A DNA stretch of 64,000 bases from Octopus bimaculoides (GCF_001194135.2 NC_069001.1:32383936-32447935); one strand, 5' to 3'; shown: positions 59,129 to 62,993, numbered from the stretch's first letter. Notes: generated from the letters alone by a model not told the origin. Translations and numbers: made by a program.

Positions 59129-59201
59129 TTAAAGAAAATAATCAGGAACTGGGTGATCTGAATTTGGTCTTCTTTTCACAGGAGCAGGATCAAATTGTAA
59201 G
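59129..59201 (-). CDS. PP2Ac-like paralog last exon ([23 protein letters not shown])
   Basis: Acceptor tttttcag|C, stop TAA at 59131-59129; 13/23 aa identical; DYFL terminus retained. Confidence 0.9.
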
Positions 59202-62200
59202 CTGAAAAATAAAGAGAATAAAACAGATTTTGTTTCATTATTTCTAATTAACAAAAACAAACAAACAAACAAGCAAATGTAGGTGGTTGTGTGGCAAGAA
59301 GCTTCCTTCCCAGCCATATGGTTCTGGGTTCAGTCACACTGTGTGGCACGTTGGTTAAATGTTTTCTACTATAGTCTTGGGAAGACTAAAGCCTTGTGAG
59401 TGGATTTGGTAGACAGAAACTGAAAGAAGCCTGTCATGTATATGTGTGTGTGTGTGAGTTTGTGTCCCCCTGCTACCACCACTTGATAACTGGTGTTGGG
59501 GTGTTTATGTCCCCATAACTTAGCAGTTTGGCAAAAGAAATCGATAGAATAAGTATTAGATTTTTAAAAAAAGTACCGGGATCAATTCATTTGATGTCGA
59601 TTACATTGACACCAGTGCATAACTGGTACTTATTTCATTGCCTTGAACAAAAAGAATACAAACGCTTCCACAATAAAGTGTGTGTGTATCTTCATTGGCT
59701 CTTATGCCGTAAATACCAATATGAAGAAACAGAGGACTGGTATGAGCATGTGCCAAGTAAAGTTACGCAGGAAGATGGAAAAGTAACGATACTCTGGGGC
59801 TATGATTTTCAGACGGATCATGTAACCGAACACCATCAGCCGGATATTGTCATATTGAATAAGAGAGACAGATGCTGTCAGATCATTGGTGTAGCCATAC
59901 CAAATGACATGAATGTTGTGAGTAAAGAGGTTGAAAATATCACCAAGTACTCCAAATTGAAAGTAGAAATGGCAAGACTGTATGGAATGCGGGAGGGTAA
60001 TGTAAAAGTGATACCAGTGGTGATTGGAGCGTTGGGCTCAGTCCCATTGAAATTTCAAGACTTCTTAAGGAAAATGGAAATCCCATGCAAGATCGATGTC
60101 TTGTAAAAAGCAGCCTTATTGGGCACAGCGCACATCTTAAGGAAAGTATTACATGTGTGAAGTCCTTGTTGTGACTTGACAGATGACTAAAGACTCCAGT
60201 GCATTTTTACCTACACTGTGTTATGAAATAATAATAATAATAATAATANNNNNNNNNNNNNNNNNNNNNNNNNNNNNNNNNNNNNNNNNNNNNNNNNNNN
60301 NNNNNNNNNNNNNNNNNNNNNNNNNNNNNNNNNNNNNNNNNNNNNNNNNNNNNNNNNNNNNNNNNNNNNNNNNNNNNNNNNNNNNNNNNNNNNNNNNNNN
60401 NNNNNNNNNNNNNNNNNNNNNNNNNNNNNNNNNNNNNNNNNNNNNNNNNNNNNNNNNNNNNNNNNNNNNNNNNNNNNNNNNNNNNNNNNNNNNNNNNNNN
60501 NNNNNNNNNNNNNNNNNNNNNNNNNNNNNNNNNNNNNNNNNNNNNNNNNNNNNNNNNNNNNNNNNNNNNNNNNNNNNNNNNNNNNNNNNNNNNNNNNNAG
60601 GGAGAAAGAGAGAATAATTGATCAACTCTTAAATGGTGGACATTATCAAATGATGTTTCATTAAAGAACAGAAGGCATCATCAAATGATGTTTCATTAAA
60701 GAACAGAAGGCATCATCAACTGATGTTTCATTAAAGAACAGAAGGCATCATCAACTGATGTTTCATTAGAGAACAATTAAATAGTTTATTGACAAATAAA
60801 TAATAAAAGGTGAAATACAACCAATGCATGTGTTTATTATTGGCACAATGACCCTCCTAAGACATGACAAAATCTGTTTCAACATACAAGTTCAGCTCAA
60901 GAATCTTGTAAATCAATTACAGAAATGAAATAATTGACATTAGTCAAAATAAAATAAAAAATAATAAAATAGGCACAAGCAAGGCTGTGTTGTAAGAAGC
61001 TGGCTTCCCAACCATATGGTTCCAGGTTCAGTCCTATTGCATGGCACCTTGGGCAAGTGTCTTCTACTATAGCCTCAGGCTAACCAAAGCCTTGAGAGTG
61101 GATTTGATAGATGGAAACTGAAAGAAACCTGTTGTACATATGGGTGTATGTGTGTGCATGTGTCTTTGTGTCTGTGTTTGTCCCCCACTACTACTCGACA
61201 ACAAGTGCTGGTGTGTTTTTACGTCTTCATAACTTGGCAGCTCAGCAAAAGCAAACGACAGACTAAGTTGCAGGTTTTAAAAAAATAAGTACTGGGGTCA
61301 ATTCATTCGACTAAGGAATTGTCCAAGGACGTGACCCAGCAAGGCTGCAATCTAATGACTGAAACAAGTAAGACAAAAAAGTGGCACTTTGAAAATATCA
61401 AAATCCTTACAAAAGTTCAAAAGTTCTCAGATTTTATATTCTGTATGAATTAAGAGCAAACTATAAAGAAACAAGAGAAATTATAATTACCTCCATGGCC
61501 AACTGGTGAGCACGAGATATGAGGGAAAGACCATTTGAGTAACAGAACAGTTCTGAAATACATTTGCCAAATGTGTAACCAAGGCCTCGAGGTGACAGGC
61601 TCCAACCATTGTGTGTACCGGGATCAGACCAAAGAAGATCACACATTGGACCCTGAAAAAGAATTTCTGTATATTTAGCTTCATGTTTACAGTGCATTAT
61701 AATTAGTTAGTCTACATTTACTCTGTAAGGAGCATAGAGCTATGACCATTTCATGCCAGTGGATGCAATCTTGGGTTCCCGCCTTGATTTCAGACCAAGA
61801 GAGAGCAACTGCTTTCATTTCATGCTCCATACATCCTTTCCAGGTCTTCTTAGATTGTCCAACTTCTCTCTTTCCCTCGGGTTGCCAGTCTAACCCTTGT
61901 CTTGCAATGCTACTTGAAGGTCTCTTTAAAGCAGTGGTTCTGAACCATTTTTTATCTATGAACCCCTTTGATTCCTATTTTACTCAGATGGGCCCTCCCA
62001 GCCATTCCATGTAAAAAACAAGAATATCATATATTTTTATAATTAGATATTAGGAATTGTATAAATAAGAATTGTTGAGATATTTTCTTTATTGTAAAAG
62101 TGTAATCAATTTATTGCATATGAATTTTAACCACAAAATCTTATGTGGACTCCTAAGGGTTACATGGATTCTGGTTGAGAACCAATGCTTCAGAGTGTAA

Positions 62201-62993
62201 CCACTCCAGTCCCATTTCCTTTCCAGAATTTTTGATGGGTGTATGGTTCATTCTATCCCACAGTGAGTTGTAGAAAAAAAGAAAAAAAATGTGCAGATGT
62301 GGCAATGTGATTAAGACGCATGCTTCCGAAATACATAGTCTCAAGTTCAATCTCACTGCATGGTACCTTCTTCTATTATAGTCATGGGCCAAGCAAGCTA
62401 TGTGAGAGGATTTGGTAGATGGAAACTGAAAAAGAAGCCCATCACATATATAAGTGTGTATACACGTGTGTATTTGTGTCTTTGTTTTGATGCTGCCGCC
62501 GCCACCACCACCACCACCACCACTGGATGTTAGGAAGAGCATCCAGCTGTAAAAGCCCTGCCAAAATAGACACAGAAGTCTGATGCAGTCTTCTGCCAGG
62601 CCAACTCCTGTCGACCTATACCAGCATGGAAAGCAGACATCAAATGATGATGATGATGATGATGATAATGAATGCAGTGAAGTGGCAGAATCGTTAGGAA
62701 GCCAGGTAAAATTCTTAGTGGTATTTTGCTTGTCTTTATGTTCTGAGTTCAAATTCTGCCAAGGTTGACTTTGCTTTTCATCCTTTAAGGGCCAATAAAA
62801 TAAGTAACAATTGAATACTGAGGTCGACGTAACTGACTTACCCCCACCCCTGAAATTGCTGGCCCAGTGCCAAAATTTGAAACCAATATAAATTTACACG
62901 TACTTCATGTGGTATTTCCTGTTTTCTGAACAAAGTATTAATGTTGTCCAAGTTGCAAATTGAAGGGGATAATCCTCCATGTAAACAAAATAT
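59129..62993 (-). CDS. Diverged PP2A catalytic-subunit paralog, partial (exons 4, 5, 7 visible; exon 6 not visible; exons 1-3 not seen, presumably beyond the right edge or in the 63087-63374 gap)
   Basis: Three exons have the same lengths (90, 162, 73 nt), phases and intron positions as the neighbouring PP2Ac gene, with canonical splice sites and no stops or frameshifts. Functional gene versus pseudogene cannot be decided here. Confidence 0.88.
59638..60248 (+). mobile_element. 5'-truncated R4/Dong-like (REL-endonuclease) non-LTR retrotransposon 3' end
   Basis: Translation [14 protein letters not shown]...W..HVP...[10 protein letters not shown]...QPDIVILNK...IIGVAIPND...KY...[10 protein letters not shown]...[17 protein letters not shown] matches the post-zinc-knuckle and restriction-like endonuclease region. 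Premature TAA at 60104-60106; (TAA)n tail at about 60228-60248. Confidence 0.85.
60641..60775. repeat. 35-bp minisatellite x3.9 (CATCATCAAMTGATGTTTCATTAAAGAACAGAAGG)
   Basis: Near-identical tandem units starting 60641, 60676, 60711 and 60746. Confidence 0.95.
61491..61652 (-). CDS. PP2Ac-like paralog exon 5 ([54 protein letters not shown])
   Basis: Acceptor tttcag|GGT, donor GAG|gtaatt; 38/54 aa identical. Confidence 0.94.
61932..62187. mobile_element. Older hAT MITE in paralog intron 4
   Basis: TIRs CAGTGGTTCTGAACC / GGTTGAGAACCAATG; degenerate TSD CTTTAAAG vs CTTCAGAG. A partial copy of the same family lies near 12985-13075. Confidence 0.6.
62674..62888 (+). mobile_element. Second tRNA-derived SINE family (GGCAGTGAGCTGGCAGAATCGTTAG...GAGTTCAAATTC...), representative copy
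   Basis: Related copies at about 1490-1720, 4640-4830, 11277-11455, 13800-13970, 19115-19320, 21260-21420, 22330-22550, 28560-28720 and 55560-55660. Confidence 0.8.
62904..62993 (-). CDS. PP2Ac-like paralog exon 4 ([30 protein letters not shown])
   Basis: Acceptor cttacag|ATA, donor GAA|gtacgt; 22/30 aa identical to exon 4 of the neighbour. Not in the ORF track. Confidence 0.92.

Follow-up and report, generated by a model that had tools for sequence, protein, structure and literature searches.

The stretch of DNA considered here, called the window below, comprises 64,000 nucleotides of Octopus bimaculoides chromosome CM046621.1 (GCA_001194135.2), and near its end lies what is very probably the 3′ half of a real, intact and selectively maintained second Octopus gene for the catalytic subunit of protein phosphatase 2A (PP2Ac), one that would have specialised after duplication. 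In a tblastn scan of the window with a human PP2Ac query, three exon-like matches were found on the minus strand within 59129-62993, besides a full seven-exon canonical PP2Ac gene at 46975..28058; for a 17-kb subject, the E-values of the three are 6e-26, 1e-12 and 2e-6. The three exons, referred to hereafter as the paralog, are situated 12 kb upstream of the canonical gene, and both genes are on the minus strand. The coding features are the following:

62904..62993, minus strand: paralog exon 4, 30 codons, with an AG acceptor and a GT donor; 22 of 30 amino acids identical to the canonical octopus exon.
61491..61652, minus strand: paralog exon 5, 54 codons, ending in SRAHQLAME; 38 of 54 amino acids identical to the canonical octopus exon.
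59129..59201, minus strand: paralog exon 7, one nucleotide of a split codon and 23 residues ending in PDYFL, then a TAA stop; 13 of 23 residues identical.
28058..46975, minus strand: canonical PP2Ac gene with seven coding exons (46975-46871, 39494-39285, 37786-37613, 34250-34161, 30222-30061, 29112-28994 and 28130-28058).

Exon 5 of the paralog encodes the H191-adjacent positions as well as W200, R214, H241 and L243 (human numbering). Every visible exon boundary carries the AG/GT dinucleotides, and the phases are the canonical ones (0, 0, 0, and phase 2 into exon 7). Over exons 4, 5 and 7 together, 73 of 107 amino acids are identical to the canonical octopus copy, the same figure that a first-pass annotation, made from the window's sequence alone, had reported, and which was reproduced when the exon boundaries were re-read; its description of intact splice sites and frames also holds at all visible boundaries. 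The rest of the gene is located past the window end, where we have followed it on locus L007 of the same species (L007 position plus window position equals 86057; locus L002, likewise O. bimaculoides, matches the window at 100% and shows the same runs of N). Exon 3 is found at the window-equivalent positions 64123-64296, which is 123-296 bp beyond the end, with exons 2 and 1 further out, and exons 1-5 and 7 of the O. bimaculoides paralog are all intact. The exon 4 sequence is identical to L007 23064-23153 and to residues 164-193 of XP_052831380.1.

Full-length orthologues were retrieved with a 190-residue query in which the window exons were padded with filler; an earlier 84-residue query made of exons 4 and 5 had returned only canonical fragments of at most 73% identity. 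The orthologue, P0261, is a protein of 310 amino acids that is identical in Octopus sinensis (XP_029649068.1, XP_029649070.1) and Octopus vulgaris (CAI9738227.1), and only two of the 107 residues in the visible window exons differ from it. In both species (loci L006 and L005, respectively) the gene has no stops and has canonical splice sites at all seven exons, and exons 1-3 and 6 are free of stops and frameshifts in the species, three overall, where they can be read. The coding exon lengths of 105/210/174/90/162/119/73 nt, with the same phases, are shared by the paralog (L005, L006), the canonical gene (window, L001) and the gene of Sepia pharaonis (L008). Thus, the same-strand tandem arrangement with identical intron positions that had been proposed from the visible exons extends to all six introns once the whole gene is recovered. 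The canonical product is also 310 amino acids long and is itself identical in the three Octopus species (XP_014788052.1 in O. bimaculoides, XP_029648988.1 in O. sinensis, CAI9738226.1 in O. vulgaris).

The membership of the paralog in the PP2A family is clear. P0261 scores 573 bits against the PDB chains of PP2Ac over residues 3-310, and at most 314 bits against every other phosphatase (PP1 at most 297 bits, PP5 232). It is 79.4% identical to octopus PP2Ac and 76% identical to human PP2Ac, but only 61% to PP4c and 55% to PP6c. The Pfam Metallophos domain (PF00149) is recognized at residues 52-244 with 146 bits (cut-off 21.5). In the neighbour-joining tree the paralog falls inside the PP2A clade, at its base; we treat this basal position as long-branch attraction because of the synteny, the third-position data and the gene conversion described below. 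The assignment of the first-pass annotation to PP2A rather than PP4 or PP6 is therefore upheld by identity, bit score and tree alike.

Its claim that the catalytic and metal-binding residues are kept can now be confirmed over the full length. In P0261, 21 of 22 key residues are retained, the sole change being T304V. The metal ligands D57, H59, D85, N117, H167 and H241, the catalytic H118, and the phosphate-binding R89 and R214 are all present, as are H191, W200 and L243; of these, H167, R214 and H241 can be read in exons 4 and 5 of the window. The phosphoprotein phosphatase motifs GDIHG, GDYVDRG and GNHE, encoded by exons 2-3 beyond the window, occur in P0261 and in P0353. The C-terminal tail reads VPDYFL in place of TPDYFL: Y307 and L309 remain, Val takes the place of T304 in all three species, and residues 294-303 are almost wholly different from the canonical ones. 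The okadaic acid/microcystin pocket, which we take from established structural knowledge to consist of Q122, I123, H191, W200, L243, Y265, C266, R268 and C269, is also entirely conserved. A toxin-resistant PP2A, adapted to dietary okadaic acid or microcystin, was considered and is unsupported, every pocket residue including C269 being retained.

Outside these residues, the paralog has changed to a degree that is unusual for this enzyme. It differs from canonical PP2Ac by 64 substitutions over 310 amino acids, concentrated in residues 2-24, 175-189, 204-244, 250-285 and the tail 294-304. When 54 canonical PP2Ac sequences, drawn from animals, fungi, plants and protists, are aligned, each one is at least 81% identical to the human protein, and the paralog is below that value. 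Nine of the 111 invariant columns of this alignment are altered in the paralog (D175Y/C, V189I, D204G, D205T, R206H, D223C, H230Y, W250M and E277Q). The substitutions are far from evenly distributed, however: of the 154 positions at which PP2A, PP4 and PP6 agree, only seven are changed, and the other 57 of the 64 substitutions are at the 155 positions that vary among the three (Fisher p = 5e-13). To judge from the sequences, such avoidance of the shared core is what would be anticipated for an enzyme that still works but has a rebuilt surface. Both D204 and D205 are placed directly in front of the active site, beside Q122 and H191 (bioRxiv 10.64898/2026.05.01.722153), and the D204G/D205T/R206H changes could plausibly alter how substrates or inhibitors are recognized.

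The substitutions D175C, D184F, D204G, D205T, D223C and N229C listed in the first-pass annotation are all present in the window. Its notion of patterned surface changes, with five acidic residues lost and three cysteines gained, stands for the acidic losses, which are common to all three Octopus species, and for Cys223 and Cys229, which are also shared by the three; Cys175 occurs in O. bimaculoides only, the position being Tyr in O. sinensis and O. vulgaris. The paralog has acquired a fourth Cys as well, at position 6 of the octopus protein, which corresponds to residue 5 of the human one. The net charge is little altered, going from -10.6 in the canonical protein to -8.8 in the paralog.

We have next to consider how the paralog has been selected. 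Between O. bimaculoides and O. sinensis, the Nei-Gojobori method counted 29 synonymous and 5 nonsynonymous differences over 270 codons, corresponding to a synonymous divergence (dS) of 0.192 and a nonsynonymous divergence (dN) of 0.008, and codon maximum likelihood gave a dN/dS ratio (omega) of 0.041 (2dlnL 62.9, p = 2e-15 versus omega = 1). The five amino acid differences are spread over both lineages, with one to three of them on the bimaculoides branch. The canonical gene shows a dS of 0.025 and a dN of 0 for the same species pair (omega ~0, no nonsynonymous change), and an omega of 0.001 by maximum likelihood, with one amino acid difference, between Octopus and Sepia. When the paralog is compared with the canonical gene with exon 3 excluded, the maximum-likelihood omega is 0.075 and the synonymous sites are saturated (dS ~1.0-1.2 by Nei-Gojobori, maximum-likelihood t ~2). 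No sign of positive selection on the paralog was seen in dN/dS in either the bimaculoides-sinensis or the paralog-canonical comparison. The purifying selection that had been argued from intact frames is therefore borne out, at a p of 2e-15 against neutrality and an omega of 0.04 rather than near 1. The label "fast-evolving" is apt only relative to the near-frozen canonical gene with its omega of ~0.001, since the paralog itself is well constrained at 0.04-0.08. With a dS of ~1 or more, its divergence is old, with no recent burst, and a recent duplication is ruled out by the same value outside exon 3.

A separate observation concerns the canonical gene. Its coding sequence has a dS of only 0.025 between bimaculoides and sinensis, compared with 0.19 in the paralog and a divergence of ~10-12% in the surrounding introns, which implies strong constraint on its synonymous sites.

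Exon 3 stands apart from the rest of the paralog. Its dS to the canonical exon is 0.09 in bimaculoides and 0.23 in sinensis, versus at least 0.95 in every other exon, and 56 of its 58 amino acids are identical to the canonical ones. In intron 2, a stretch of ~140-300 bp next to exon 3 on its upstream side can be aligned between the two genes at ~82%, and no alignable intron flanks were found at any other exon. The canonical exon 3 has 10 sites that differ between octopods and decapods; at 8 of these the paralog agrees with the octopods. Because of the low dS, the alignable intron 2 flank and the octopod-state sites, these data indicate gene conversion in the octopod lineage, in which canonical sequence replaced exon 3 and the adjoining stretch of intron 2. 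Synonymous constraint as the cause of the low exon 3 dS is ruled out by the 10 octopod-decapod differences and the alignable adjacent intron. The O. bimaculoides paralog further agrees with the canonical gene at 5 of the 6-7 exon 3 sites that differ between the bimaculoides and sinensis paralogs, which hints at another, later conversion in O. bimaculoides but is not significant. The tract can be delimited as follows:

L007 ~21460-21934, window-equivalent ~64123-64600: gene-conversion tract, matched to canonical 37613-37786 plus flank up to ~38090, recognized by low dS and ~82% intron identity.

With exon 3 set aside, the paralog sides with the octopods at 38 of the fixed octopod-decapod differences, with the decapods at 21 and with neither group at 14 (p = 0.036), and its third-position distance is 0.45 to the octopod canonical genes and 0.54-0.55 to the decapod ones, a difference that is not explained by the G+C content of third positions. 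Dating of the duplication against the octopod/decapod split is unstable, different methods placing it anywhere from ~0.3 to 0.8 of that depth, and we have used the direction of these data alone, and that marginally. The duplication is ~10 times as old as the bimaculoides-sinensis synonymous distance.

Synteny gives the same direction. In all three Octopus genomes, an orthologue of RACK1 (a 317-residue WD40 protein) is arranged head-to-head ~690 bp from the start codon of the paralog, past the window end (L007 1104-9314, L005 88-9302, L006 110-9304), with the canonical-sequence copy further downstream. Sepia pharaonis has just one gene at this site, a canonical one, arranged head-to-head ~500 bp from a WD40 gene (L008 1-9504) homologous to the octopus RACK1 neighbour; this 312-residue Sepia gene was matched to the octopus neighbour, not itself compared with RACK1. 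No second PP2Ac copy was present within 10 kb of the syntenic Sepia gene, and among the databases searched the paralog was found only in Octopus. From the shared octopod states and the synteny, an origin of the duplication within the octopod lineage alone is therefore the most likely, in keeping with the lineage-specific origin suggested earlier, although a duplication before the split followed by loss in Sepia may be an alternative history. On the same grounds, it is the diverged copy, not the conserved one, that has kept the ancestral promoter-side neighbourhood, and the canonical-sequence copy is in a new 5′ context.

The one coding exon missing from the O. bimaculoides gene is exon 6, and the reason is apparent from the assembly, in which the features around the visible exons are:

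60249..60598, no strand: assembly gap, replacing ~760 bp that comprise part of intron 5, exon 6 (119 nt, expected) and part of intron 6.
63087..63374, no strand: second assembly gap, within paralog intron 3.
59595..60001, plus strand: O. bimaculoides-specific insertion in intron 6, within a 192-residue open reading frame at 59528-60106; outside the gene.

The first gap touches no visible exon: exon 5 is 893 bp away on one side and exon 7 is 1048 bp away on the other. Its flanks are collinear with O. sinensis (window 60668-60602 equals L006 33026-33092, and window 60248-60002 equals L006 33851-34094) and align collinearly with O. vulgaris too. The interval between the flank anchors measures 758 bp in O. 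sinensis and 773 bp in O. vulgaris, and exon 6 is inside it in both (L006 33168-33286 and L005 34937-35055). A permissive tblastn (word size 2, E up to 1000) found nothing like exon 6 in the sequenced bases from exon 5 to exon 7, and the same search over window 47001-64000 gave no credible match for exons 1-3 either. Judged by this collinearity, exon 6 of the O. bimaculoides paralog is hidden in the gap and not demonstrably lost. Since the exon is 119 nt long, a direct exon 5-exon 7 join is out of frame, and the coding sequence therefore cannot be closed in this assembly.

The 192-residue reading frame at 59528-60106 on the plus strand has no Pfam match, and in O. sinensis and O. vulgaris the orthologous intron 6 lacks the ~400-bp segment that carries it; the segment probably represents a mobile-element fragment inserted in the O. 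bimaculoides lineage. Two kinds of repeats were also noticed in this part of the window. A 35-bp tandem repeat (CATCATCAAATGATGTTTCATTAAAGAACAGAAGG) is present in 3.9 copies of 97% identity at 60641-60775 in intron 5, adjoining the gap, and a ~300-bp interspersed repeat (GGCTGTGTGGTAAGAAGCTTGCTTCCCAGCCACATGGTTCC...) occurs in four copies, in both orientations, at ~59280-59600, 60960-61320, 62290-62480 and 63440-63830. The latter copies, located in the paralog introns, resemble short interspersed elements, and most are followed by a TG-rich microsatellite.

The unread exon also accounts for the database entries at this locus, for the gene is already in RefSeq and ENA under generic names. XP_052831380.1 and XP_014788030.1 of O. 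bimaculoides represent the same gene as the window exons, as exons 4 and 5 are identical in both and exon 7 is identical in XP_014788030.1. All three O. bimaculoides models (262, 280 and 317 residues) go wrong after exon 5, because exon 6 is in the assembly gap and exons 5 and 7 are out of frame: XP_052831380.1 (262 residues) splices to a 15-codon exon instead of exons 6-7, XP_014788030.1 (280 residues) reads through the exon 5 donor, and an older model (317 residues) ends in a junk tail. The substitute exon is:

56259..56306, minus strand: 15-codon terminal exon (NTNYILKQSGDKKKK, followed by a stop) of XP_052831380.1, standing in for exons 6-7.

The O. sinensis sequence homologous to the NTNYILKQSGDKKKK exon is still open, its 15 codons having two nonsynonymous changes and one synonymous change, and neither O. 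sinensis nor O. vulgaris has a gene annotated across the sequence homologous to 56259-56306. Most likely the exon is a modelling artefact of the gap, although it is possibly a 3′-untranslated or spurious exon. The name "PP2A catalytic subunit beta isoform" attached to the sinensis and vulgaris entries is an automatic label and misleads, as the paralog is not an orthologue of vertebrate PPP2CB. Two other O. vulgaris entries were noted at these genes, P0243 (CAI9738225.1, 410 residues), a canonical PP2Ac whose last 11 residues are swapped for an unrelated tail of 111 residues, and P0260 (CAI9738228.1, 244 residues), a paralog isoform that starts from Met66 and is without the metal ligands D57 and H59; both are probably annotation artefacts.

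Taken together, these data lead to the following picture. The canonical PP2Ac gene, with the same seven coding exons, was duplicated in tandem long ago, and exon 3 with the adjacent part of intron 2 was later homogenised from the canonical copy. From the residues retained, the protein should be an active Ser/Thr phosphatase subunit, with a terminal Leu that can probably still be carboxy-methylated, and it probably assembles on the A scaffold. With its altered surface, the protein probably engages a different set of regulatory subunits, inhibitors or substrates, which would amount to specialisation and not redundancy.

Several observations count against a functional second gene, and they deserve to be set out together. 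No Logan transcriptome contig encodes the paralog, and the canonical protein was found in several. No metatranscriptome contig carries it either, and a scan of metagenomes and metatranscriptomes with peptide patterns specific to it recovered only canonical PP2A of other eukaryotes, at 69% or less. Exon 6 of O. bimaculoides is unread, and a lesion within the gap is possible for this species. Finally, the nine substitutions at invariant PP2Ac positions could impair some canonical interactions. The searches constitute weak negative evidence that expression of the paralog is low or restricted, and the sole indication of expression is the existence of the RefSeq and ENA gene models. Among the papers searched, nothing relevant came up on an octopus PP2Ac paralog or on PPP2CA variant data at D223.

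As to the form that the specialisation of this second gene has taken, we tentatively put forward a neofunctionalised PP2Ac, in which a remodelled rim (D204G, D205T, R206H), the surfaces 175-189, 223-231 and 277-285, and the tail 294-304 with T304V would select distinct regulatory subunits, endogenous inhibitors or substrates. If this were the case, the paralog would found an octopod-specific class of PP2A-like phosphatase, arising as PP4 and PP6 once did, and would constitute a natural experiment on which invariant PP2Ac residues catalysis can spare.

That the duplicate does the same biochemical job and is kept by partitioned expression, in tissue, stage or level, with the surface changes as tolerated drift, seems to us rather unlikely. 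Such subfunctionalisation agrees with the retention of all the catalytic, toxin-pocket and C-terminal DYFL residues, with the low omega free of any positive-selection signal, and with the position of the paralog, which occupies the ancestral head-to-head spot by RACK1 while the canonical-sequence copy is in the new 5′ context. However, an unchanged job predicts a constraint similar to that of canonical PP2Ac, which tolerates almost no change (one amino acid between Octopus and Sepia, omega 0.001), whereas in the paralog nine universally invariant positions, including the acidic rim before the active site, were changed and then fixed under purifying selection.

Far less probable is a pseudogene or decaying copy, either in general or only in O. 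bimaculoides after loss of exon 6. A coding sequence that cannot be closed in this assembly, three O. bimaculoides models that are truncated or aberrant after exon 5, and the failure to find a transcriptome contig with the paralog would all fit decay, but they are outweighed by the 310-codon reading frame that is intact, with its splice sites canonical, in both O. sinensis and O. vulgaris, by the omega of 0.04 (p = 2e-15) for the 270 codons compared between bimaculoides and sinensis, by the mere one to three of five amino acid differences on the bimaculoides branch, and by the mapping of exon 6 exactly into the unread interval. As a general statement, the pseudogene is refuted by the omega of 0.041 and the lack of stops, frameshifts or lost splice sites in three species. 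An ordinary PP4/PP6 orthologue, or an assembly or haplotype duplication of the canonical gene, has nothing more than generic family similarity to commend it and is refuted by the identity (79% to PP2Ac versus 61% and 55%), by the PP2Ac exon structure, the tandem location and the gene conversion with the adjacent PP2Ac gene, by the 21% amino acid divergence with a dS of ~1 or more, which no haplotig would show, and by the same arrangement in three independent assemblies, so that we consider it scarcely credible.

The second gene is of interest because PP2Ac is among the most conserved eukaryotic enzymes, and a copy in which 21% of the residues have changed and then come under strong purifying selection is informative. 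Comparison of the two sequences may show which of the "invariant" PP2Ac positions serve the recognition of partners and regulators and not catalysis; two of the nine changed invariant sites are in the acidic rim that faces the active site. The paralog is a candidate component of a lineage-specific holoenzyme repertoire in cephalopods. On the practical side, every O. bimaculoides gene model at the paralog locus is wrong, exon 6 being in an assembly gap. New in the present work are the placement of exon 6 in this gap, the demonstration that the O. bimaculoides models are artefactual, the quantification of purifying selection on a diverged PP2Ac, the exon 3 gene-conversion tract, and the synteny argument for an origin in the octopod lineage.

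Compared with canonical PP2Ac (octopus XP_014788052.1; human PPP2CA, PDB 2IE4/2NPP chain C), the paralog has the same length of 310 amino acids, the same seven exons, the same fold family and the key residues including Y307 and L309. It differs in being only 79% identical, which is further than human PP2Ac is from any of the sampled fungal, plant or protist PP2Ac (at least 81%), in the loss of a regulatory phospho-site through T304V, and in an omega that is 40-80 times higher. The vertebrate genes PPP2CA and PPP2CB are ~97% identical and unlinked. Like vertebrates, Octopus has two intact PP2Ac genes per genome, but the octopus pair is 79% identical, in tandem and partly homogenised by gene conversion, and the two pairs are of independent origin.

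With PP4c and PP6c the paralog has in common a PP2A-like core, its changes being mainly where PP2A, PP4 and PP6 differ among themselves, and nine of its residues correspond to PP4 or PP6 states, including a PP4 "VxDYFL"-type tail (T304V). It is nevertheless distinct from both, with identities of 61% and 55%, and keeps the PP2A signatures LQFDPAP, GYTFG and PDYFL together with the PP2A gene structure and synteny.

The testis-biased phosphatase paralogs of Drosophila (PpY-55A, PpN58A, PpD5, PpD6, Pp1-Y1/Y2) are PP1-type and mostly intronless retrocopies. They resemble the octopus gene in being lineage-specific extra catalytic genes that have diverged from a highly conserved parent, which is the analogy drawn in the first-pass annotation. 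The octopus paralog, in contrast, is PP2A-type, a tandem duplicate made at the DNA level with six introns kept, and has an omega of 0.04-0.08. The analogy is therefore weakened, because all the introns are retained, there is no sign of positive selection, and the paralog has stayed at the ancestral position beside RACK1.

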